Sequence record: OR513085.1
DNA length: 64,000 nt
Strand: one strand, 5' to 3'
Part shown: piece by piece, positions 44,257 through 58,374 of the stretch
Layout: each line of letters opens with the position of its first letter
How positions within the stretch are numbered: the stretch's first letter is position 1
Position numbers and translations under genes: made by a program
The notes under the pieces: model-generated
What the model was told of the DNA's origin: nothing
What the model saw: the letters and a program-made list of their open reading frames with translations, nothing else
The model's database searches: none

Positions 44257-45237
44257 ATGTCAATTTTCCAGCCTAGAAAACACTATAAACCATTTGAATA
44301 TCCGCAAGTACTACAATTCACAGAAGCCATGCAAAAAGGCTTCTGGGTACATTCTGAAGTAGATTTTACTGCGGATGTTCAAGACTTCCATTCACAACTT
44401 GAACCATTTGAACAAAATGCAGTTAAGAATGCTTTACTTGCAATCGCACAAATCGAAGTTTCAGTTAAAACATTTTGGGGTAACCTTTACAACTTATTTC
44501 CTAAGCCTGAACTTAACGGTTTAGGCGCTACTTTTGCCGAATGTGAATTTCGTCATTCGGAAGCATACTCTAGGCTACTTGAAGTTCTTGGCTTCAACGA
44601 CGAATTTGAAAAAGTTCTTCAAGTACCTGCAATTGCTAAACGTATTGCACAGCTTAACTTGGCTAGAACTGACTATCCTAACTTAACAGAGGAACAGGCA
44701 AAAACAGTTAACTTACTTATGTTTGCTGTGCTTGTTGAGAATGTTTCGTTATTTTCACAATTCGCTACGGTACTATATAAGTCCCGATTCTACGGTGTCA
44801 TGAAAAATGTCGCAAATATAATAAATTGGACCTCAATTGATGAGGGATTGCATGGACAGGCCGGGCTAATGCTAATCAATATAATAAAGGAAGAGCACCC
44901 GGAAATTTTTACTGATGACCTTAAAGCCGAGATCGTTAACAAAATTCGCGAGTCTATCGACATAGAAGCCGAAATTAATGCTTGGATTTTTGAGCAGGGC
45001 GACTTTGAAAAATGTACACAGGCCGACTTGTTAGCTTACATGAAGCAAAGAGTTAACGATAGTATGGAAGTTATTGGCTTTGACAAACCATTCTCAGCAG
45101 ATGAAATAGTTTTGGCTAAAAATTTAAAATTCTTTGAGGAGGAGGTGTATGCTAATTCTTTGGATGACTTTTTTGCCCGCAGACCGGTTGACTATTCTAA
45201 GCATGACAAATCAATTACTGCCAATGACTTATTCTAA
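44257..45237 (+). CDS. nrdB: ribonucleotide reductase class I beta subunit (Flavobacterium-type, class Id-like)
   Basis: AQIEVSVKTFW, ECEFRHSEAY, VENVSLFSQF, IDEGLH, DFFARRPVDY. Confidence 0.95.
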   Translation: MSIFQPRKHYKPFEYPQVLQFTEAMQKGFWVHSEVDFTADVQDFHSQLEPFEQNAVKNALLAIAQIEVSVKTFWGNLYNLFPKPELNGLGATFAECEFRHSEAYSRLLEVLGFNDEFEKVLQVPAIAKRIAQLNLARTDYPNLTEEQAKTVNLLMFAVLVENVSLFSQFATVLYKSRFYGVMKNVANIINWTSIDEGLHGQAGLMLINIIKEEHPEIFTDDLKAEIVNKIRESIDIEAEINAWIFEQGDFEKCTQADLLAYMKQRVNDSMEVIGFDKPFSADEIVLAKNLKFFEEEVYANSLDDFFARRPVDYSKHDKSITANDLF

Positions 45238-46325
45238 CATAGGCATACAAATAAACTTATCCGAGTTGCACAAAAACCCGGATAAGTTTTTTGACATTAT
45301 AGATCATAATTGCTATACAATTTACAAAGTTACCAATTTAGTTAACAACAAGTCGTATATAGGCGATACTAAAATAAGTTTACGTGTACGAATATTTGAT
45401 CACATACATGGCAGTTTTGCTAAAGTTCCATTGCATTTATATAATGCAATTAATAAGCATGGCCTTGAAAATTTTGCAGTAGAGGTAGTGTCATATAACG
45501 AACATGATACCGAAAAATTCTACATTGACAAATATGACACATGGTATAATGGATATAATGCAACAAAAGATGGTAAATTTTATCAACGGCATGCATATGA
45601 CAAAACTATATCAGTTTTTAGCAAACAATTAGATATTTATCGTCGAATTAAACCTTTTGAACTTGACACGTATTTGTCTAATGGATGGGTAAAACGAAAC
45701 GTTCATTCAGATTATAAGTGCATATACAATGAAAGTTTAGACATTTATACAAAGGTGCATAAAAATGAACTTGACACGTATTTGTCTAATGGATGGATAT
45801 TGCAAGGTTTAAATACTGGCACAGTATATATGACTACTAATGATGGCAAGCGTACTAAAATAAAGCCTGAATTAGTACAAGACAAATTATTACAAGGGTA
45901 TACTATTGGCTGGGGACCTAATGACCCAGACAGCCGTAAATACATACCGGTGCATAACGCTGAACATACAGTAAAAGTTTCAAAAAAACGAACTGCAGAA
46001 ATTTTTAGACAATGGTTTTATGCGAGGACTGCATCCAAATGACAGAAAAACTAAAGACAGAGGGCTATATACGTATGTGCATAATTATGTTTCGCAAAAG
46101 CGTATATTACGATCTGAACTTGACACGTATTTGTCTAATGGATATGTTAGTGCTAAGTTAGCTCAATCTAAAATTAAAGTTAGAGTAATTAATTGCATAA
46201 ACAAATGCAAAGAACTTAACTTAGAAATTAACGAAGAAAATTTTAACAGTGTACGTAATCAAGGCGATATACGTTTCATAGAGTATACTAAAACAAAAGA
46301 GGCATTCCCCTCATTTTTCAACTAA
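45224..46325 (+). mobile_element. free-standing GIY-YIG homing endonuclease split by a +1 frameshift at A7 (45982-45988)
   Basis: TIYKVTN..YIG motif; ELDTYLSNG repeats continue in the +1 frame ORF 46020-46325. Confidence 0.8.
45658..46143 (+). repeat. three exact 29-bp direct repeats TGAACTTGACACGTATTTGTCTAATGGAT
   Basis: at 45658, 45766 and 46115; encode ELDTYLSNG. Confidence 0.9.
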
Positions 46326-47200: not shown

Positions 47201-48424
47201 ATGTACAAATTCATATACGTCTGGTATAACAAAGCCAGATTTTTTGACAAAACTAAAGACTTACCTTGGATTTATATCGGCATGCACAGAGGGCATATTG
47301 ACGATGGTTATATATCGTCTTCAATTTACTTAAATACTGAAATGCAACAAGATACTGGCAATAATTGGCAGCGTATAATTATTAAGCGTTACGAAGATTC
47401 CGTAAGCGTAGAAGAAGTTTATGCACATGAATGCGCATTGATACGTGCAGCATTTAAACGATATGGCTTTAGCAAAGTACTTAATAGAACTGCAACATTT
47501 AATAAGCCAACATCAAAGGGAAAAGTAAGACTTATAGTACCTGATTCTAATGGTGCTATGATTTGGGTGCCTAAGGCAAATAAAGAAGCATACTTGGAAC
47601 TTGGATATGCTACATTAGCAGGTAAATATAAAACTATTGGTAAGCTTAAAATAACTAACGGCGAAGAAAATAAATTAGTAACAAAAGAAGCTTTTGCTGA
47701 AATGGACCAAAGCATTTGGCGCATTGGTCAGACTAACCGAGTTGAATTTGGAAAAGCTATAAACAAAGATGGTCAAGTAAGATATGCAAAAAGTCATGAA
47801 CTAGATTCATTTTTAGCAGAAGGCTGGACATTAGGAATAGGTAAACGACCAAAATCTCCTAAAGCTGGCGACTCTATGCGCGGTAAAGTTGCTATAAATA
47901 AAGATGGACGTAATAAGTATGTAATGCCTGAAGAACTTGACACTTTTTTAGCAGATGGTTATATTAGAGGTACTGTAAAATGCCCTACTGAAAATCTAAT
48001 TTGCGTGAACAAAGATGGTAAAAACAAATTTATAATGCATGAAGAGGTCGATGCGTTTTTAGCAGATGGCTGGACATTAGGTAACACTAAACGAGGTAAG
48101 CGTAGACTTATGAATAATGGCGAGCATGCTAAACATGTACCAAATGAAGAGGTCGATGCGTTTTTAGCAGATGGTTGGGTATACGGCAAAATAATAAATG
48201 CTGATGCAGAACGCAAAGTATGCATCAACAAAGACGGCAGTACTAAATTCGTATCGCCATCCGTAATTGAAGCATTCTTAGCAGATGGTTGGAAGTATGG
48301 CAGCCCTAACAAAGGCTCACGAAAACTTATGACTAAAGATGGTGAGCGTAACAGGTATATAAATGAATCTGACATAGAAGCATTCTTAGCAGATGGCTGG
48401 ACATTAGGCAATAAAAAAGTATAA
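47201..48424 (+). mobile_element. free-standing Seg-like GIY-YIG endonuclease with about 6 C-terminal repeats
   Basis: FIYVW...IYIGMH.G..DDGY.SSS; repeated NKDG..K.V...E.DAFLADGW..G. Confidence 0.8.
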
Positions 48425-48468: not shown

Positions 48469-50190
48469 ATGCAAGAACGAAATGCACCTTCGTGGATAAA
48501 CGAAGAATCACTGGCTATGCTTAACAGAGGTTATTTATTGCCAGGAGAAACTGTAAACGATGCAATTGACAGAATATGTAAAGCTGCGGCGTCTTATTTT
48601 GTAGGGACTAAATACGAAGCAGATGCTTATAGTAAATTCCGCAGAAACATTGAAAATAACTGGATATCATTCAGTTCACCAGTTTGGTCCAACATGGGAA
48701 CTAATCGAGGCTTACCTATATCTTGTTTCAATACACATATTCCAGATGAAATGTTTGGCATAGCAAATAAACATACAGAGAATGTTATGATGTCTAAGCT
48801 AGGAGGAGGTACTTCATCATACTGGGGCGAGCTAAGAGCCAGAGGTACTAACATTACAGATAACGGAAAAGCTGGCGGCCCAGTACCATTCATGAAAATG
48901 TTCGACACTATGATGACTGTAATTTCCCAAGGAGGTGTTAGAAGGGGAAGCCATGCAGCTTACTTAGATATCGACCATGCAGATATTGAAGAGTTCTTGC
49001 AAATTAAAGAAATCGGCAACGATATACAAAACCTATTCACTGGTGTTAACGTTCCGGACTACTGGATGAATGACATGATTAATGGAGATACTAAAAAGCG
49101 TGAAATCTGGGCTAAAGTGTTAGAGTCAAGAAAAACTAAAGGATTGCCTTACATTTTCTTTACTGACAACGTTAACAAAAATAAACCGCAAATTTACAAA
49201 GATCGTAAGGCAGATATTAAGTCTTCAAATTTATGCGCCGAAATAATGTTGCCATCTACGTTGACTGAATCATTCGTCTGCTGTCTTTCATCAATCAACT
49301 TAATTAAGTGGGATGAAATTAAAGATACTGATGCTATATTCTGGGCCATATTGTTCCTAGATGCAGTTATGCAAGAATTTATTAACAAAACTAAGGATAT
49401 GCCAGGTATGGCCGAATCCAGAGCATTTGCAGAAAGACATAGAGCCATCGGCTTAGGAGTTCTAGGCTATCATGCATACTTGCAGTCTAAAATGGTAGCA
49501 TTTGATTCTTTTGAGGCTACTAGAATCAACAACAGTATATTTAAACAATTGGGCAAGCAAACTAAAGAAGCTTCCGAAGAAATTGGAAAAGAACTTGGAT
49601 TTGCTCCAATATTCCTAGAAGGCGAAACTACTGATATTCCTAGAAGGCACACTACGACCATGGCGTTGCCCCCTACGACATCATCTTCAAGTATAAGTCA
49701 AATTTTCTATAAAAACGAAGATGGTTCAACAGAGGCCTTTGGTAATTCCCCTGGGATAGAGCCGTATTCATCAAATTATTACAAAGCCGGTCTTGCAAAA
49801 GGCAATTTTATGAGAACTAACGGATTCTTAAAACGATTGCTGGTAGAAAAAGGCCTGGACAATGAAGACATTTGGAGAGGCATAATGCTTAACCATGGCT
49901 CAGTTCAGCACATAAACGAACTATCCGATCATGAGAAAAATGTTTTCAAAACGTTCAAAGAAATTTCGCCGTCAGCTATTATAACACAAGCAGCTCAGCG
50001 ACAAGTTTACGTAGATCAAGGTCAATCTTTGAACTTGCTAATTCCTACAGAAATGAGCGTCAAAGACGTCAATCGTCTATACATCGAAGCCTGGGAAAAA
50101 GGCGTTAAAACATTGTACTACCAAAGATCATCGTCAGTTTCCAAGGAAATGATGACTGGCTTTGTAACTTGCAATAGCTGTGAAGCTTGA
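48469..50190 (+). CDS. nrdA: ribonucleotide reductase class I alpha subunit, no ATP cone
   Basis: FSSPVW, PISCF, GGGT, SNLCAE, CCLSS, PPTTSSS, KTLYYQR, C-terminal CNSC. Confidence 0.95.
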   Translation: MQERNAPSWINEESLAMLNRGYLLPGETVNDAIDRICKAAASYFVGTKYEADAYSKFRRNIENNWISFSSPVWSNMGTNRGLPISCFNTHIPDEMFGIANKHTENVMMSKLGGGTSSYWGELRARGTNITDNGKAGGPVPFMKMFDTMMTVISQGGVRRGSHAAYLDIDHADIEEFLQIKEIGNDIQNLFTGVNVPDYWMNDMINGDTKKREIWAKVLESRKTKGLPYIFFTDNVNKNKPQIYKDRKADIKSSNLCAEIMLPSTLTESFVCCLSSINLIKWDEIKDTDAIFWAILFLDAVMQEFINKTKDMPGMAESRAFAERHRAIGLGVLGYHAYLQSKMVAFDSFEATRINNSIFKQLGKQTKEASEEIGKELGFAPIFLEGETTDIPRRHTTTMALPPTTSSSSISQIFYKNEDGSTEAFGNSPGIEPYSSNYYKAGLAKGNFMRTNGFLKRLLVEKGLDNEDIWRGIMLNHGSVQHINELSDHEKNVFKTFKEISPSAIITQAAQRQVYVDQGQSLNLLIPTEMSVKDVNRLYIEAWEKGVKTLYYQRSSSVSKEMMTGFVTCNSCEA

Positions 50191-50547: not shown

Positions 50548-50754
50548 ATGAAAACATTTAGCCAGTTTATCACCGACTGCATGGTCAGTTTCGGCAACTT
50601 CGTTCTGTCAAAAGAACGTGAGGATAATGTTTCCGAAGAAGTCAAACGATCAGTTACGGATGCTGACTTGGCTAATTGGAAAGAAAAGAACAACATAACG
50701 GACAATAACAACTCAATAGAAAATCACGAACCTGGGAATGGCATCAAACTTTAA
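50548..50754 (+). CDS. small hypothetical protein
   Basis: operonic ORF. Confidence 0.55.
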   Translation: MKTFSQFITDCMVSFGNFVLSKEREDNVSEEVKRSVTDADLANWKEKNNITDNNNSIENHEPGNGIKL

Positions 50755-52108
50755 TAACGATCAAAACGGAAATGGAGGGCTTGGCTCTGATGGAATGTAT
50801 CACGATGGACATATGTATGTTTCCGATGAAATGCTAAATTGCGGACCTGTAGGAGGCCAGCTACAAGGCGGTCAATGGAGACACTTCAAAACATTTGACC
50901 CTAACTCAAACGGTTCATTGCCTTGCGGTAACTGTGGCAATTCACACTGTCATCATTGTCATACTTACTTACAAAATGGTAAATGGTCAAATGACTATCA
51001 TGGCTACAATCATCATGGATATTCGCCTGACCAAACTACAAGGTACATGATGAAATATCATGGAGGAAATTATGCACAGCTTAAAAATCTAAACAAAATT
51101 GTCAAAGATCGTAAAGCGACAAAAGTTATTTACATGGATTTTGATGGCATATTCTCCGGAACTATGGCATACAATAAGGACGAGAAATTCATGAAGACTG
51201 CGCAATTTTCTGCACGTTATGCTATTGAAATGCTTAGATTCTACGGATTTGAAGTTAACATTATAACAGGCGACCAATCTGGTTCAGGGTTTGACATTAC
51301 TAACAAAATTTTGGAAAGAATTCCGGTTAATTCTGTACAATACGTATCTGGTCATGACAAATTCATGCATATGTCTGCCAACCACGACATAACTAAAATA
51401 TTCTATGTCGGCGATGATCTTTTCGACTTAGGAATGGCTGCTGGTCGTAGAACTCCTATTCTTATGACTACAGCAAATGCTATGTGGGCTTTGAAAAATA
51501 TGGCACATTACACGGCACTTTCAGGTTCGCATGATTATTCAGTGTTTGACATTGCGTCGGCTATACTTATGTCTTTTGAAATTGACCCTATTGCATATGC
51601 TGCCAAGACTAGAAGAAACAAAATTGCTACAGACCTTGCGGCTAACATAAACTTTAGAATCGGAAATAACATAGCATTCACTGAAAATTCGCAAAACTGG
51701 ACTGCTAATTACTTACCAATTTTAGTTTCTGACTATGGAGTTAATCCTGATCACATAGGACTTACTACTCCTTATGTTAAGCCAGACAACATGAAGTCTG
51801 TAGATGACATTTATATTGCTACTAACTTAGATTATTTTGTAGACAACTATGCATCATTAAGGCATAACAGGACTTATTTCTTACTACCTAGAGAAATTGG
51901 CCTAGGTGATGTTAAGTTTATTGAAACATTAATGGCACTGGACAAACTACTAGCATCGCCACTAATTGAATGGACTATATTAACTGACCACCTTTCTGAA
52001 AATTCCAAGCCTATGCTTTATGCAATTTGTATGGAGAAAAAGCTATACAATGTACTTTCTGCGACAGGCTTTACTGACCCGCAGATATCACCTACTAGCG
52101 GAGGCTAA
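50738..52108 (+). CDS. KdsC/YrbI-type HAD sugar-phosphate phosphatase with His/Cys/Gly-rich N-terminus and extra C-terminal domain
   Basis: DFDGIFS (motif I), IITG, HDK, YVGDDLFD; N-terminal CGNCGNSHCHHCH. Confidence 0.75.
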   Translation: MASNFNNDQNGNGGLGSDGMYHDGHMYVSDEMLNCGPVGGQLQGGQWRHFKTFDPNSNGSLPCGNCGNSHCHHCHTYLQNGKWSNDYHGYNHHGYSPDQTTRYMMKYHGGNYAQLKNLNKIVKDRKATKVIYMDFDGIFSGTMAYNKDEKFMKTAQFSARYAIEMLRFYGFEVNIITGDQSGSGFDITNKILERIPVNSVQYVSGHDKFMHMSANHDITKIFYVGDDLFDLGMAAGRRTPILMTTANAMWALKNMAHYTALSGSHDYSVFDIASAILMSFEIDPIAYAAKTRRNKIATDLAANINFRIGNNIAFTENSQNWTANYLPILVSDYGVNPDHIGLTTPYVKPDNMKSVDDIYIATNLDYFVDNYASLRHNRTYFLLPREIGLGDVKFIETLMALDKLLASPLIEWTILTDHLSENSKPMLYAICMEKKLYNVLSATGFTDPQISPTSGG

Positions 52109-52150: not shown

Positions 52151-53974
52151 TTATCGTTCAGATGCATAAATCCAAAAATTACGTATCCATTGCTTAACTG
52201 CCAAGGTATACCCAAAGTTGTTTGGATGTAAACCATCACCGGTAGTTATTGACAATGTCTCATCAGTAATTTCAGACTGTCTAAATTGGTCAATGTATCG
52301 CCAACCATTTAGTGCGGCAATGGTCATAATTGCAATTTCGTAGTCTAAAAGTGTATGACCTGCGGTGTTTGTTGATGTTGATGTATAACCGCCATTGTTT
52401 CGCCTAAAGGCATTAGAGCAAAATATAACTGCACCAGGTGTAAGACTTTGAACTTTGTCATTAAACGCTCTTAATGCGCCATAATATGTTAGTATGCCTG
52501 TAGCATTTTTATAATCATCAATTGTACCTATAGGAATATTACGCTTAAAGTCATTAGTAATAGTGTCAATTGACCAAAAGCCATCAGAAGTATCAGTCCA
52601 TGTATTAAAATAGTTTGTTATAGATGCAGTATCGCCAGTAGGTAATGTAGCGCCTAATGATCTTCCTGAGTAACAATATTTGTTGTAACCGTTGAACTTA
52701 AATATTTTTTTAATTAATGTTTGTATACCTACAGCCATAGTGTCAGTACCGCTATACAAAACACCATCCTGGGCCCATATAGAATGACCTACACAATGCC
52801 AAACTTTGTCAATTTTGATCTTTTCAGTAGCTTTGGTAGTAGGCAATAACTTTTCAATTATCTTTGGCCCAGTTAATGTTACTACTGGAGGAGTTGCAGA
52901 ATATCCGCAAGCTCTAATAGCAACTATGTCTGCAGGAACAATTACTTTAATTGGTTCCAATGAATGATCTGAATTGCCAATTAATACTTGTACACTGTTA
53001 TCTGCTTTGTAACCCACCATACCAACTGCTGCAGTAGATTGATTAGTTGCGCCAGTATAGCCTAACGTTAAACCTGCAACATCATGAATAAGTTCAGTAG
53101 TTCTCCAATTGCCGGAATTAATTACTGCGCCATTAGCATCTATGTATGAATTGGCTGGTGTATAATCACCGGTAATGTCAGTTACTATGCTTTCAGTAAG
53201 CGGCGACATTATAACGTTTTTGCCTTCATCTGTAGCTACTATGGCGTATTCAAGCTTATTAAATTCAAGTGAAATGTCTATAAATCCTTGTGCAGTGCCA
53301 AATGCGGTTCCGCTTAAATCATTGACTGTAGTAATGTATGGTGTACCATAACCTGCTGCGGCGGTACGTAATACTGCTGGCGACACTCGCTTATATGCAA
53401 ATGGGTTGTTTGCTAATATTTGCACCCACATGTCGTTAGAATAGTCTATAGCTAGGTCAAAGTTTATCGTAGCTAGTGCTTGGACTGTTGTGCTAGCAGG
53501 AATAACTTGACGCTTCTTTTTAATTAGTCTACCACCTGCTGCTTTGCCTTCAAACAACCTAATTTCAATTTCAGTTACAGGAGTTTCAATTTTTTGGGCA
53601 AAATGAATGTTTACTTTGTCAAAAGGCTCGGCTACAATTCCTAACGATGCAGATATTCCATGAACCGATGTAACTGTAGAATTGCCAATAGTTCCGGTTG
53701 CAGTAACTTGCTTTTCAGAAGTTTCTACTAAAGCATTAGTGAACAAAGTATTTTGTATAAGTACTTTAGTGTCTATGTATTCAGAAGTAGCCTTCATTAC
53801 TGCGCCTTTAGTATCATCTGCAGGATTAAATGAAGTTTCCAAGTTAATGCCTGGCATGTCTTCCTGATTTAAGACTTTTAGCACATCACCTTCAGTCACT
53901 ATAATTTTTGCTTTAACTTTCTCGGTAGCACCGCCTAACTGCGATGGTAACAGCCGCTTAAATTCATTAGCCAT
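52151..53974 (-). CDS. virion-associated protein with C-terminal SGNH/GDSL esterase domain
   Basis: VGHSI (block I), SGRSL, ITND, DGLHPN; beta-rich N-part; TATAAATA upstream on the minus strand. Confidence 0.7.
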   Translation of the reverse strand: MANEFKRLLPSQLGGATEKVKAKIIVTEGDVLKVLNQEDMPGINLETSFNPADDTKGAVMKATSEYIDTKVLIQNTLFTNALVETSEKQVTATGTIGNSTVTSVHGISASLGIVAEPFDKVNIHFAQKIETPVTEIEIRLFEGKAAGGRLIKKKRQVIPASTTVQALATINFDLAIDYSNDMWVQILANNPFAYKRVSPAVLRTAAAGYGTPYITTVNDLSGTAFGTAQGFIDISLEFNKLEYAIVATDEGKNVIMSPLTESIVTDITGDYTPANSYIDANGAVINSGNWRTTELIHDVAGLTLGYTGATNQSTAAVGMVGYKADNSVQVLIGNSDHSLEPIKVIVPADIVAIRACGYSATPPVVTLTGPKIIEKLLPTTKATEKIKIDKVWHCVGHSIWAQDGVLYSGTDTMAVGIQTLIKKIFKFNGYNKYCYSGRSLGATLPTGDTASITNYFNTWTDTSDGFWSIDTITNDFKRNIPIGTIDDYKNATGILTYYGALRAFNDKVQSLTPGAVIFCSNAFRRNNGGYTSTSTNTAGHTLLDYEIAIMTIAALNGWRYIDQFRQSEITDETLSITTGDGLHPNNFGYTLAVKQWIRNFWIYASER

Positions 53975-54003
53975 ATTTATAATTTTTAATAGTATTTGTA
54001 GTT

Positions 54004-54011
54004 TATTTATA
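54004..54011 (-). promoter_or_regulatory. T4-type late promoter motif TATAAATA (minus strand)
   Basis: TATTTATA on plus strand, about 30 nt upstream of the 53974 start. Confidence 0.45.
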
Positions 54012-54051
54012 TTGCACCTAAAATTGCAATAAATATGTATATTAGAATAAT

Positions 54052-54276
54052 ATGCTAACTTATATAACAGACAGGAAGCGCCACTTAATATGTGAGCCGT
54101 ATAGCTTAGAAAACTTGCATCGCATGGCTACGGAATTGAACATAAACATTTGCTGGTTCCATGGTGGCAAATATCCACACTACGATATTCCTAAACGTAG
54201 AATTGCAGATATTGAAGAACGCTGCAAAATAGTTAGGCCTCGTGAATTGTTGCAAATTATCAAAGATAACCAGTAA
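54052..54276 (+). CDS. DUF4031-like small protein
   Basis: LHRMA..L.I...WF......HYDIP pattern. Confidence 0.6.
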   Translation: MLTYITDRKRHLICEPYSLENLHRMATELNINICWFHGGKYPHYDIPKRRIADIEERCKIVRPRELLQIIKDNQ

Positions 54277-54328
54277 CTTTGCCGCATGCTTAGTATCATA
54301 TACACATATAACAAATAAACATAGACAA

Positions 54329-54934
54329 ATGCTAGTACTTTTTGAAGGTCCGGATGGTTCCGGTAAATCCACACTAATTGCCAAAATAAAGCAAAAGTTT
54401 CTGCCGGAAGCTTTAGTATGTAAGCGTAATTCGTTCAAAACATACAATCCGGAGGAATCAAAATACCCAACTAATATCGACTTAACGTTATCCGCACCAT
54501 GGGACTGGAGATTTTTCTTGGAAATGCATGAAGCTAATTTCAAGTCACATAATTTCCTTTGCGACAGATCATTCATTACACAAAGAGTTTACCAGGATGC
54601 TTTAGGCCCTGAAACTAAAACTCCTGAATTGGATGCTACTTTGTTAGCTTACGAACATGAAGTTTCGCAAATTCCTCACCTAGTAGTTTATTGTAAGCGT
54701 AAAACTCTACGTAACGATGGCGACTTTGCTGCAATGGATAACAAAGAACTTGATATTGTTGCAAGGTACGAGGAATACATTGACAATGAATGTACTTTGA
54801 ACAAAATTGTCATTGACACTGAAAAACTTGACATCGACTCTTGTACTGCTTTGATAGTCGGTGCTATCCAGGCAGCTTACAATCACTATGTAGAAAACAA
54901 ATCTGGTAAAGCTATTAACATATGGGCAGATTAA
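54329..54934 (+). CDS. deoxynucleoside monophosphate (thymidylate kinase-like) kinase
   Basis: FEGPDGSGKST P-loop, CDRSFIT..VY; likely start ATG 54329. Confidence 0.85.
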   Translation: MLVLFEGPDGSGKSTLIAKIKQKFLPEALVCKRNSFKTYNPEESKYPTNIDLTLSAPWDWRFFLEMHEANFKSHNFLCDRSFITQRVYQDALGPETKTPELDATLLAYEHEVSQIPHLVVYCKRKTLRNDGDFAAMDNKELDIVARYEEYIDNECTLNKIVIDTEKLDIDSCTALIVGAIQAAYNHYVENKSGKAINIWAD

Positions 54935-56265
54935 ACAAACAGCCTGGGGGTCTTCTTGACTCCCAGTTTTCCGCAATACTTTCACAAAAAACTAACAGAA
55001 CAATAATCGAAGCCAATTCGGTTCATGATGCTTACGTTCTAGGACTTCATGCATTAGCTAACGGTAGCCAGGATATCGAAGTTAAGGAAGGAGTCAAAAC
55101 AAAAAACTTACACAATGCAATAATTGAACTTACTCCTCAGTATTCCGAGGAAAATCCAATGGGCTACTTTAGTAAGCGAGTTTTTTGTAAAAAGCGTAAC
55201 CTGACTAACAAAATTCAAAATGCTGAGTTTGCTTGGTATATGACGCTAAACTCCGAAGTTGACGCTATCACACCTTACATCAAAAATTGGAATAAGTTTT
55301 CTGATGACGGCATTCATGTTAATTCAAACTACGGAGCTATCTGGGCTGAGCAAATGCCAGGAGTCATACAAAAGCTGGTTTTTGATAAGTATACTAGGCA
55401 GGCTTCGTTAGCAATTTATTCAAGAGACATGGCTAACATGCATGACTCCAAGGATATAAATTGTACATTGTCAGTAGACTTCAAAATTTTACCAAGAGCT
55501 ATTGGCGGAGGTGATGAACTTCATATGACTGTAATGATGAGGTCTAACGATATTGTTCACGGTCTACCAATTGACATGTTCTGTTTCGGTACGCTTTTGG
55601 AATTGTTACGTAACGAACTAGCTACGTACTACGAAAACTTATACTTAGGAACTTACACGCATATTGCAACATCATTGCATATCTACGAAAATGCTTACGA
55701 TAAGTTAGAAGGCATTGAACTTATGGAGCCTGAACGTATTCAAAAGAAAAACGAAATCACAGCAATTCCGCCGGCAGTAACTTACATGAACTTCTGGGTA
55801 CATCAACCTGCATATATCATGGGCATCCTGGATAAAAAACATTTTGCCAAGTTCACCAAGAACTATGATATGTTCTTTTCGTTCAATTTCATTAACTCGT
55901 TAGTTGAGGAGCTTTATATCGACAAGCATAAAAACTACACTAACTTGATTAAAATTGAGGACTTAATGCCAGTATTCGATGAAGTTGTAGCATACTGTGA
56001 TGAGTATGACATTACATTACCTGCACAAGAATATGCTAAGGACAAAGTAAAAATGTTTGATTTACTTTATGACTGTGCTAAAATAGCAGGAACACAAATG
56101 ATGTCTACTGCATTTTTGTCAACAGTTATACTGGCTAGGGATGCTGCACATTTTAAACAATCATTCACGCATATAAGCGGTTTTGCATCTAGCAAATTCC
56201 CGATAACTAGATATTGTGCATACCAGGCAGTACTTAATTATGTTCTAAACGCACCGAAAGACTAG
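54922..56265 (+). CDS. dCMP hydroxymethylase/hydroxylase-like enzyme (T4 gp42-like, thymidylate-synthase fold) with C-terminal extension
   Basis: AEFAWY, VNSNYG, DINCT (catalytic Cys), MRSNDIVHGLPID (Asp at the dCMP-specificity position), SLHIY. Confidence 0.85.
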   Translation: MGRLNKQPGGLLDSQFSAILSQKTNRTIIEANSVHDAYVLGLHALANGSQDIEVKEGVKTKNLHNAIIELTPQYSEENPMGYFSKRVFCKKRNLTNKIQNAEFAWYMTLNSEVDAITPYIKNWNKFSDDGIHVNSNYGAIWAEQMPGVIQKLVFDKYTRQASLAIYSRDMANMHDSKDINCTLSVDFKILPRAIGGGDELHMTVMMRSNDIVHGLPIDMFCFGTLLELLRNELATYYENLYLGTYTHIATSLHIYENAYDKLEGIELMEPERIQKKNEITAIPPAVTYMNFWVHQPAYIMGILDKKHFAKFTKNYDMFFSFNFINSLVEELYIDKHKNYTNLIKIEDLMPVFDEVVAYCDEYDITLPAQEYAKDKVKMFDLLYDCAKIAGTQMMSTAFLSTVILARDAAHFKQSFTHISGFASSKFPITRYCAYQAVLNYVLNAPKD

Positions 56266-56334: not shown

Positions 56335-58374
56335 ATGGAAAATAATTTAGAAAACGACATTTTAAACATTTTAGGAGGTGGCCCGGCTGAACGGATAGAG
56401 CCATCAAAAGACGAATTCATTGAGGCGATTGTAGAATCACATGACCCTACTAGCCCAATTGCTAAAGCTTACGAAAAGCTACCAGGCGGTAACGTAACGT
56501 CTGAAAGTTGCGAAGAAAAGCCTGATGAAATGCTAGAACTTATGTTGGCTGTACTTGACAAGGCTTTGGTAGAAATTCAAGCAGGTAACGACAGATTTTC
56601 AATTGAACGATTCAACGGATATCAGCGAGCTATACTAATGGAAATGTTCAAAAACTATATTGCCAGGAAGCATAGCATCTTAATTGCACCAACTGGTTCA
56701 GGTAAATCGTTAATTGGTTTACTTTTTACTCACGTTATTTCGCAGGTTACGCAAGGACGCTCAACAATCCTAGCTTCCGATACGTTCCTGCAAAATCAAT
56801 ACATTGAGTCTGACAATTTCTTTACAAAGCATGTTAAAGATGCTTCATTTGCCATGCTAAAAGGTAAATCAAACTATCGTTGTGATGCCAATTTTCAACC
56901 TTATACTCAAGGAGTTTGTGAAATGCGTAGAGTTAAGCCTGAAGTTGCTGCAGAAACTATGCCGTGCGCAGCTAATTGCGGCTATGTTCAGTCATACTTA
57001 GGTGCCAAAGAAGCTCAGATTCGTGTATACAATTATCACCTTTGGCTATCTTATGCAAATTTTGTAGGCTCGCATCATGCATTACTTAAAGGCGATGTAG
57101 TCAAAGTATTTGACGAGTGTCACAAAGTTGATGACATTATGGATGGCTTTGCTAACGTAAAGATCGGCTTACAATTTATGAAAGCTTTAGATAACGCTAT
57201 AGCTTCAATAGACTTAATGCTAAACACTATTAGTCAGCCATTCCAAGAGCATATAAAAGATGCAAAAATTCAATATGCTGAAGTTTATCGAATGGTGCTT
57301 ACAGGTAACATTCCAGTTGCAGATATCCAGGCACAGTTTATGAAAGCTATGCAAGTAGTTACTACGTTCTACAATAACAATCATATTATTGAGGAGCTTA
57401 TAATTGAAGTATCTGAGCAATACAGCAAAGAAATTCGTAAAGGTGTTGAACTTCCATTTACAATTTCAGCACTTTTTGAGTATGAAACTTTCGTTACTAA
57501 GTGTTCAATGATGTACTACGATTGTAAAAATATTTCGGCAGACAAATTTGTAGTTAACTATGATGCTGGTGATAATTCATTGACTATAGCAAATATCTCA
57601 ACTGCTGACAGATTCCAAAACTTATTCAAGGACAAGCTTTCATGTCCTATAGTTTTCATGTCTGCTACCGTAGGTAATGCTGAATACTTCATAACTTACA
57701 TGGGCTTAAAGCCGGAAGACGTAGGAATTATTGACGTCGACTCGCTATTTGATTTTAGCAGATCGCCAATCATTGCCACACAACCGTTACTTTCGATGAA
57801 CCCAGCAAACAAAGATGCTAACCTACCAGAATTAGTAAAGTATGTTGTGCAAATTATGAAAGCCCATCATTCACATAATGGAGTTATTCATACAGCAAAC
57901 AAGTCTATTGCGCGATATCTTTGGGATAACTTACCGCCTGAGCAACGCTCACGAATCATAACATATTCAAACGCTGCAGAAAAACGTACCGCAGTCGAAA
58001 CGTTGACTCCTACAAGCAACAAAGTTATCATTGCATATTCAATGGAAGAGGGTGTCGACCTTAAGGATGATCTTTGTAGATTCCAAATAATTACAAAACT
58101 AAGCTGGGCGTATCTAGGCGACTACGTTATTAAACGTAAAGCTGATGTTTATCCTGAATGGTATGTAATGTCAACGTTAAACAAAATTTTGCAAACGTTT
58201 GGTAGAGGTAACCGACATATTGACGACTATTGTATCAATTACGTTACAGACACTTCGTTTACTAGAGTGCTTGGCGGAATGGATAGCGTTACAAAATCCA
58301 GGTTTAAAGACATATTCTACGACAACATAACAGAGGAATTTGTACAAAATACATTCAATCCTCCAGCTATTTAA
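56335..58374 (+). CDS. dinG: DinG/YoaA-family Fe-S SF2 helicase
   Basis: APTGSGKS, 4-Cys cluster (C..VC..PC..NC), FDECH, MSAT, EGVDL, QTFGRGNRH; likely start ATG 56335. Confidence 0.85.
   Translation: MENNLENDILNILGGGPAERIEPSKDEFIEAIVESHDPTSPIAKAYEKLPGGNVTSESCEEKPDEMLELMLAVLDKALVEIQAGNDRFSIERFNGYQRAILMEMFKNYIARKHSILIAPTGSGKSLIGLLFTHVISQVTQGRSTILASDTFLQNQYIESDNFFTKHVKDASFAMLKGKSNYRCDANFQPYTQGVCEMRRVKPEVAAETMPCAANCGYVQSYLGAKEAQIRVYNYHLWLSYANFVGSHHALLKGDVVKVFDECHKVDDIMDGFANVKIGLQFMKALDNAIASIDLMLNTISQPFQEHIKDAKIQYAEVYRMVLTGNIPVADIQAQFMKAMQVVTTFYNNNHIIEELIIEVSEQYSKEIRKGVELPFTISALFEYETFVTKCSMMYYDCKNISADKFVVNYDAGDNSLTIANISTADRFQNLFKDKLSCPIVFMSATVGNAEYFITYMGLKPEDVGIIDVDSLFDFSRSPIIATQPLLSMNPANKDANLPELVKYVVQIMKAHHSHNGVIHTANKSIARYLWDNLPPEQRSRIITYSNAAEKRTAVETLTPTSNKVIIAYSMEEGVDLKDDLCRFQIITKLSWAYLGDYVIKRKADVYPEWYVMSTLNKILQTFGRGNRHIDDYCINYVTDTSFTRVLGGMDSVTKSRFKDIFYDNITEEFVQNTFNPPAI

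Follow-up and report, generated by a model that had tools for sequence, protein, structure and literature searches.

The locus and its product

The stretch of DNA considered here (‘the window’, 64,000 nucleotides (nt)) comprises bases 62001-126000 of the 218.5 kb genome of Chryseobacterium phage MA9V-2 (OR513085.1), a jumbo phage whose host is C. indologenes MA9; the sister phage MA9V-1 is 90% identical to it (megablast). The window encodes two proteins with the thymidylate synthase (TS) fold, one a canonical ThyA and the other, MA9V2_146, a protein whose probable substrate and product, and whose long C-terminal tail, are the subject of this account. In the published descriptions of the two phages the gene is named at most ‘thymidylate synthase’ and DNA modification is unmentioned. 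The features on which the argument turns are the following (window positions).

54922..56265, + strand: MA9V2_146, the whole open reading frame (ORF), 447 amino acids (aa), annotated ‘thymidylate synthase’; second TS-fold protein of the phage
54985..55842, + strand: TS-fold catalytic domain, residues ~22-307, as delimited by Pfam PF00303, phrog_5131 and VIA structure comparison
55450..55467, + strand: KDINCT, with catalytic Cys181 (E. coli C146), Asp178 at the L143 position and Thr182 at the H147 position
55540..55575, + strand: RSNDIVHGLPID, with R166, S167, N168 and D169 kept, G173, and Asp218 at the N177 position; invariant in all seven active members
55843..56265, + strand: orphan helical C-terminal domain, residues 308-447, about seven helices in the model, with F379 and C385 its only invariant residues
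17754..18698, + strand: canonical ThyA, MA9V2_094, the internal reference for Asn177 and Leu143

The architecture of MA9V2_146, a TS fold followed by a tail, is not an assembly artefact, as the same two parts are found in nine further homologues (seven from independent metagenome assemblies, the MA9V-1 orthologue and the fragment P0121). Identity of the full-length homologues P0002-P0007 to MA9V2_146 is 38-45%.

Membership of the TS/pyrimidine hydroxymethylase superfamily is evident from the match to PF00303 (E 5.6e-13; 49.1 bits with a cut-off of 24.3) and to phrog_5131 (E 2.4e-34), the PHROG matches ending at residue ~275. An AlphaFold2 full-length model built from seven family members (mean pLDDT 82.8, pTM 0.85) is closest in VIA comparison to MilA, the CMP hydroxymethylase of mildiomycin biosynthesis (Z 25.6), followed by the dCMP hydroxylase AfhB of HY126 (23.2) and E. 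coli TS (21.5); MilA is also the best sequence match (phmmer E 3.3e-8). E. coli TS residues 1-249 align structurally with model residues 35-299 and MilA residues 3-296 with 28-307, so that the TS domain ends at about residue 299-307 and the unexplained tail is of about 140 aa (308-447). The catalytic and ligand residues C181, E102, Y137, R207, S208, H253 and Y255 (E. coli C146, E58, Y94, R166, S167, H207 and Y209) are invariant in seven active orthologues.

Active-site signature and substrate

Eighteen diagnostic positions (E. coli TS numbering) were compared with those of T4 gp42, HY126 AfhB, RB69 gp48, Acinetobacter phage AB-Navy71 gp077, Bacillus phage CampHawk gp138 and the window ThyA. 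AfhB and RB69 gp48 are makers of 5-hydroxy-deoxycytidine monophosphate (5-hydroxy-dCMP; PDB 9iqc/9iqu; PMC13326640), and CampHawk belongs to the group of phages with hydroxymethyl-deoxyuridine monophosphate (hydroxymethyl-dUMP). MA9V2_146 and six active orthologues have E58, W80, Y94, R126, Q127, D143, C146, T147, M165, R166, S167, N168, D169, G173, D177, H207 and Y209. Over the 18 sites only two distinguish MA9V2_146 from T4 gp42, the R127Q replacement and the 83-equivalent (Phe in MA9V2_146, Val in T4), and the counterpart motifs of gp42 are SDFMCT and RSNDVVFGFRND. The window ThyA, with RSVDTGLGEPFN and ALPPCH, has all the hallmarks of the canonical enzyme (Asn177, Leu143, His147 and a short C-terminal lid); MA9V2_146 has none of them, with D218, D178 and T182 at the three positions and a helical domain replacing the lid.

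Three rules from earlier work give these residues their meaning: N177D shifts preference from dUMP to dCMP (Lee et al., PMC13326640), L143D or L143E accompanies hydroxymethyl instead of methyl products (PMC13326640), and D169N is diagnostic for flavin-dependent 5-hydroxy-dCMP synthases (PMC13326640). MA9V2_146 has Asp218 at the first position and Asp178 at the second, retains D210 at the third, and keeps with it G214 and W123 of the folate site. Also, as the phage has a separate canonical ThyA and its genome encodes dihydrofolate reductase (DHFR), MA9V2_146 is not needed for dTMP and is free for another job. We infer from this combination, with a probability of about 0.62, that MA9V2_146 belongs with T4 gp42 and MilA as a folate-dependent dCMP hydroxymethylase and is fused to a lineage-specific non-catalytic helical domain. 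If so, the DNA of the phage probably contains a modified cytosine.

The preliminary description of 54922-56265, made from the letters alone, has stood up well as a set of observations. The Asp that it noted where the window ThyA has Asn aligns in the Asn177 column, and the likeness that it saw between DINCT and the DFMCT of T4 gp42 is borne out by the alignment of KDINCT with SDFMCT. Its proposal that the Asn-to-Asp switch specifies dCMP is reinforced by the change of L143 to Asp, the keeping of D169 and an RSND identical to that of gp42. The implied singularity of the signature has, in contrast, largely evaporated: RSND...G...D is present in ~118 of the 120 closest homologues drawn from a 5.8-billion-sequence database, most having an Asp three residues before the catalytic Cys. 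The catalytic signature is ordinary and the assignment unsurprising.

The same description also raised flavin- and O2-dependent hydroxylation, and of the rival explanations this is the one with most to be said for it. MA9V2_146 would then be a 5-hydroxy-dCMP synthase of the AfhB/RB69 gp48 kind, with arabinose added to its product on DNA, as in RB69, HY126 and DLP3. AfhB is structurally close to MA9V2_146, as the Z of 23.2 illustrates. However, the three 5-hydroxy-dCMP synthases compared (AfhB, RB69 gp48 and AB-Navy71 gp077) all have 80V/168Q/169N/173V/209F, and MA9V2_146 differs at all five, having the W/N/D/G/Y of the folate enzymes, with D210 invariant in the family. On these residues the hydroxylase alternative is disfavoured and we consider it unlikely; what keeps it alive is the presence of arabinose genes elsewhere in the genome, to which we return below.

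An orphan C-terminal tail

It is the tail rather than the active site that sets MA9V2_146 apart. Following the HxY motif, T4 gp42 has ~28 residues and 118 close homologues have a median of 87.5 aa, with 60-120 aa being the clade norm. The MA9V clade, at 175-192 aa (192 in MA9V2_146), is at the extreme, with a gap down to the next longest at 124 aa. Residues 308-447 are confidently predicted within the full-length model (block-mean pLDDT ~77-95). When modelled alone from residue 266, the tail has a pLDDT of 72.6 as against ~90 within the full model, its first 40-50 residues being disordered; the poorer result is explained by those residues belonging to the TS domain.

No relative of the tail was found apart from its own kind. 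A Pfam scan of seven tails at E up to 10 gave only chance-level matches, and a PHROG scan no tail match. A tail profile searched against 1.84 billion protein representatives matched five, all of them attached to TS folds or fragments of such proteins. Nothing significant came from fold searches with the isolated tail model, whether by Foldseek against PDB (best E 0.71) or AFDB clusters (E 1.4), by a Foldseek-independent PDB scan (VIA; Z 5.1) or against the ESM Atlas (TM up to 0.37). An ESM feature search returned viral TS fragments at 0.74, under the lead threshold, and there is no profile similarity between the tail and the SPO1-like extension (hhalign probability 0.3%). The extra five-helix C-terminal domain of MilA is away from the active site, and its truncation renders the protein insoluble (PMC5175136). 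Part of that region of MilA superposes on MA9V2_146 residues 265-307, but residues 308-447 have no MilA counterpart, MilA being included in the PDB against which the isolated tail gave no significant match.

Is the tail then a second enzyme? In this version the C-terminal 140 residues would be a second catalytic or ligand-binding domain (a pyrophosphatase, a modified-nucleotide transferase or a redox module with Cys385) and the protein would be bifunctional. There are viral fusions of TS folds to kinases and to dCMP deaminases of similar total length, the domain is confidently predicted, and Cys385 is invariant even in orthologues with a dead catalytic domain. However, Cys385 is the only invariant polar residue, its sole invariant companion being Phe379, and among active orthologues the tail is only 17-25% identical as compared to 47-54% for the TS part. 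A second active site would be expected to leave a different pattern. The domain is, besides, all-helical without a nucleotide-binding motif, it has no Pfam, PHROG, PDB, AFDB or Atlas family match, and the helical tail of MilA has no known activity. Bifunctionality is accordingly improbable.

The preliminary description correctly had the 447 aa protein as much longer than T4 gp42 (246 aa) and its C-terminal part as helical and unexplained, and requires correction only as to size, the ~170 aa that it gave being an overestimate. Of the two roles that it offered for this part, that of partner binding is viable and indirectly favoured, and that of a second catalytic domain finds no support in the few invariant residues, the lack of family or fold matches and the fast divergence.

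Two independent structure searches showed a weak resemblance of residues ~369-441 (56026-56244), the last four helices, to AAA+ lid domains such as those of Hda, DnaA, RuvB and the clamp loader (TM ~0.3). Though this likeness to a four-helix bundle is recurrent, a Z of 3.5-4.6 and an rmsd of ~3 Å over 62-70 residues are noise for helical bundles, and it was rejected as evidence. Rejected too were a MazG-like dCTPase (nothing matched, and the phage has a MazG-like gene apart from it) and a degenerate kinase (the tail is all-helical and has no P-loop).

Orthologues that have lost catalytic residues

Two metagenomic phage contigs have syntenic orthologues in which the active site has been dismantled.

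L016:10001-11290: P0122, dead syntenic orthologue, 429 aa
L021:6642-7946: dead syntenic orthologue, 434 aa

They share C146R, R166S and H207Y, Glu58 is replaced by N or I and Arg126 by P or N, and Ser167, Gly173 and Tyr209 are likewise replaced. Relative to MA9V2_146 their TS part is 34-36% identical and their tail 31%, the latter being the highest tail identity of any homologue. With each other they are 48.6% identical, and this is essentially uniform (48.5% in the tail and 48.8% in the former catalytic part); such mutual divergence means that the inactivation is old. Yet both are intact ORFs that retain the tail, Cys385 included, and the adjoining kinases keep their P-loop and are 77% identical. 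The two look like a pseudoenzyme subclade. Their persistence indicates that the protein, tail included, has a value independent of catalysis, and it lends indirect support to a scaffold or partner-binding role for the tail over a second catalytic site.

Gene neighbourhood

The gene for MA9V2_146 is in a conserved order, namely ribonucleotide reductase (RNR) alpha, a small ORF, a HAD-domain protein, a kinase, the TS-fold protein and a DinG-like helicase, all or part of which is present in every related metagenomic contig recovered. The neighbours of most relevance are these.

50738..52108, + strand: MA9V2_142, 456 aa, with a KdsC-like HAD phosphatase core (residues ~115-277; E 0.0018 to KdsC)
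54329..54934, + strand: MA9V2_145, P-loop nucleotide kinase, 201 aa (phrog_761 ‘thymidylate kinase’, E 1.2e-18)
56335..58374, + strand: DinG/Rad3-like helicase, the conserved downstream neighbour

The 3′ end of the kinase gene overlaps the start of the TS-fold gene by 13 nt. Kinase synthesis could start at GTG 54242 (54242-54934, 230 aa) or at the annotated ATG 54329 (201 aa), and the latter is supported since homologues align from it. The pairing of kinase and TS-fold genes is conserved in L003, L007 and the two contigs with dead orthologues; it appears to hold also in L005 and L017, in both of which the start of the TS gene is overlapped from upstream by an ORF presumed to be the kinase. Confined to this clade and small (12 clusters), the kinase family is, at 60-67% identity, much better conserved than the TS-fold protein (38-45%). 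In earlier work kinases were co-expressed with TS homologues (PMC13326640). By analogy with these and with T4 gp1, MA9V2_145 is the likely acceptor of a modified deoxynucleoside monophosphate (dNMP).

MA9V2_142 has three parts, a Gly/His/Cys-rich N-terminus (~1-115) that is missing from the shorter L003 orthologue, the HAD core with a conserved DxDG, and ~175 C-terminal aa. The HAD gene, being directly upstream of the kinase gene in relatives, may act in the same pathway. A MazG-like pyrophosphatase (phrog_1992, E 4.7e-35) is likewise encoded by the phage and is a candidate for dCTP depletion.

Several other features of the region deserve recording. In MA9V-2 an SGNH/GDSL-hydrolase gene and a DUF4031 gene (52151-54276) are between the HAD and kinase genes and look like an insertion, being missing there in L003, L016 and L021; the former has a weak tail-fibre-like PHROG match and is the sole minus-strand gene of the surrounding stretch. 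The genes for RNR beta (44257-45237) and RNR alpha (48469-50190) are apart with several ORFs between, among them a homing-endonuclease-like gene (45224-46042) and a GIY-YIG nuclease gene (47201-48424), and in L003 and L004 two ORFs are called for the RNR large subunit. Outside the window, at OR513085.1 149314-155537, a family-B DNA polymerase is represented by two ORFs (‘DNA polymerase II’ and ‘DNA polymerase family B’), both matched by HY126 gp43 (tblastn); three ORFs part the polymerase pieces, one of them a TnpB-family RNA-guided endonuclease gene.

A possible sugar modification pathway

Also outside the window is a pair of genes reminiscent of those of phages with arabinosylated DNA.

OR513085.1 184718-187693 (L010:9718-12693): MA9V2_233, a SIS-domain protein, and MA9V2_235, ‘GlmU’, with one small ORF between

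The Afh pathway of HY126, RB69-like and Acinetobacter phages supplies the UDP-arabinose with which 5-hydroxycytosine in DNA is arabinosylated, an isomerase and the bifunctional kinase/uridylyltransferase AfhE being among its enzymes. MA9V2_233 matches phrog_5670 ‘arabinose 5-phosphate isomerase’ (E 1.5e-36) and is 30% identical to the HY126 isomerase. In MA9V2_235 (586 aa; phrog_4098 at 4e-70) an N-terminal nucleotidyltransferase is followed by a C-terminal APH-like kinase, and 97-99% of the protein aligns with the AfhE of HY126, RB69-like and Acinetobacter phages (~26% identity, E ~1e-30). This suggests a UDP-pentose pathway in MA9V-2, in which MA9V2_142 could supply the phosphatase step even though it is not an AfhF homologue. 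A tblastn search of MA9V-2 with HY126 AfhF and the HY126 glycosyltransferase found neither, and Pfam and PHROG scans of ~30 candidate ORFs gave no glycosyltransferase match, though divergent enzymes could be missed.

Do these genes bear on the choice between hydroxylase and hydroxymethylase? For the hydroxylase there is, besides the full-length AfhE homologue and the isomerase, the HAD phosphatase near the TS gene, and RB69, DLP3 and RL38J1 also have a thymidylate-kinase-like gene adjoining their TS homologue. However, Synechococcus phage S-SRM01 (L018; NC_070963.1 191592-205028) has the same trio of isomerase, AfhE-like protein and phosphatase with no TS gene nearby, amid about nine glycosyltransferase-type genes, two epimerases and a methyltransferase. 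At home in a cyanophage glycan cluster, the trio is not specific to DNA modification and carries no implication of 5-hydroxycytosine, and as proof of DNA glycosylation it was rejected. A sugar-modified, pentosylated, cytosine derivative in MA9V DNA is nevertheless possible.

A more elaborate conjecture is that MA9V-type phages pair a folate-type dCMP hydroxymethylase with an Afh UDP-arabinose pathway to yield pentosylated 5-hydroxymethylcytosine, with the tail docking the enzyme in a nucleotide-modification or replication complex; the docking would then be important enough to have persisted in relatives whose enzyme is dead. We regard this as distinctly unlikely. Pentosylated 5-hydroxymethylcytosine was once proposed for RB69, a proposal later revised, and we know of no phage in which it has been demonstrated.

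Proposed mechanism and its alternatives

The course of events that we infer, by homology with T4 gp42 and ThyA, for a folate-dependent dCMP hydroxymethylase is as follows. MA9V2_146 would work as a homodimer in which Cys181 attacks C6 of dCMP, Asp218 reads N3 and N4 of the cytosine so that dUMP is disfavoured, and Glu102, Tyr137, His253 and Tyr255 have their usual TS roles. Asp210 (D169), Gly214 and Trp123 would maintain the methylene-tetrahydrofolate site and, with Asp178 in place of the water-excluding Leu143, water would add to the exocyclic methylene to give 5-hydroxymethyl-dCMP and tetrahydrofolate. Phosphorylation of this product would fall to the P-loop kinase (54329-54934), whose gene is translationally coupled to that of the enzyme; the pool of dCTP could be run down by the MazG-like pyrophosphatase, and dTMP would come separately from the canonical ThyA with DHFR. 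Phage DNA would then contain 5-hydroxymethylcytosine, possibly decorated further. Residues 308-447 would be a folding, scaffold or partner-docking module, for instance for the kinase or a nucleotide-synthesis complex, and not a second enzyme.

Several points weigh against this. The D169N rule is established in one direction only, from enzymes with D169N to 5-hydroxy-dC, and keeping D169 is no proof of folate chemistry. With Gln at the R127 position, as in the SPO1-like enzyme, phosphate binding is slightly unlike that of T4. Homologues of the arabinose-activating enzymes so far found with 5-hydroxy-cytosine phages are encoded in the genome, in which neither a DNA glycosyltransferase nor a homologue of the T4-type dCTPase came to light. 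The role suggested for the tail derives from negative results and conservation patterns, and the invariant Cys385 could be functional.

Apart from the hydroxylase and the bifunctional protein considered above, there are two further alternatives. One is a dCMP methyltransferase making 5-methyl-dCMP, or another methylene-transfer variant. Asp at the 177 position and the intact folate-type site speak for it, and the phage DHFR could recycle the dihydrofolate. However, Asp178 at the L143 position correlates with hydroxymethyl and not methyl products (PMC13326640), the C-terminal lid with which ThyA closes over folate is replaced by the helical domain, and the RSND and CT motifs are exactly those of T4 gp42, the comparison set being without a verified dCMP methylase. 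We consider this highly improbable. Least probable of all is that MA9V2_146 is mainly a structural, pseudoenzyme-like component of a phage with unmodified DNA: the two related phages with dead full-length orthologues do point to a value beyond catalysis, but MA9V-2 and six other orthologues have all of their catalytic and ligand residues unchanged, which indicates purifying selection on activity.

Significance and comparison with known systems

The MA9V phages are under development as biocontrol agents against root rot of Panax notoginseng. If they have a cytosine-modifying pathway, it would affect their sensitivity to restriction, CRISPR and modification-dependent defences, the sequencing and cloning of their DNA, and predictions of their host range. 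More generally, active and dead orthologues with the same orphan domain provide a handle on the role of the C-terminal extensions of pyrimidine hydroxymethylases (MilA, the SPO1-like enzymes and many phage homologues), and bear on scaffold roles for such enzymes as proposed for the T4 complex that synthesizes deoxynucleoside triphosphates. What makes the system worth attention is the orphan domain, together with its retention in dead orthologues and the previously unreported likelihood of modified cytosine in the DNA of a biocontrol phage.

Of the known systems, T4 gp42 (PDB 1b5d/1b49) has the TS fold and the diagnostic residues in common with MA9V2_146, and both phages have a separate ThyA. 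Overall identity is only ~24%, however; gp42 has 246 aa with ~28 residues after HxY as against 192, position 127 is Arg in one and Gln in the other, and the T4 gene adjoins a glucosyltransferase gene whereas that of MA9V2_146 adjoins a kinase gene. MilA (PDB 5jnh/5b6d) also has Asp at the 143 and 177 positions and an extra helical C-terminal region remote from the active site, and its superposition on the model reaches residue 307. MilA prefers ribo-CMP owing to Ala176 and Lys133′, while MA9V2_146 has Ser208 at the Ser167 position as do deoxy-specific enzymes, and its tail is of ~90 aa while MA9V2_146 runs ~140 aa past the shared part.

AfhB and RB69 gp48 share with MA9V2_146 the TS fold (Z 23), Cys146, Asp177, an acidic residue at 143, a kinase neighbour, and AfhE and isomerase homologues in the genome, but they have V/Q/N/V/F rather than W/N/D/G/Y at positions 80, 168, 169, 173 and 209, and at 234-238 aa are without a tail. 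The SPO1-like dUMP hydroxymethylase (CampHawk gp138, 383 aa) has Asp143, RSND, Gln127 and a long C-terminal extension, but Asn177, in keeping with dUMP as substrate, and its extension has no detectable homology to the tail of MA9V2_146. The enzyme is thus best filed with the dCMP hydroxymethylases, as one of a known kind that is new in its unusually large, orphan and fast-evolving helical tail.

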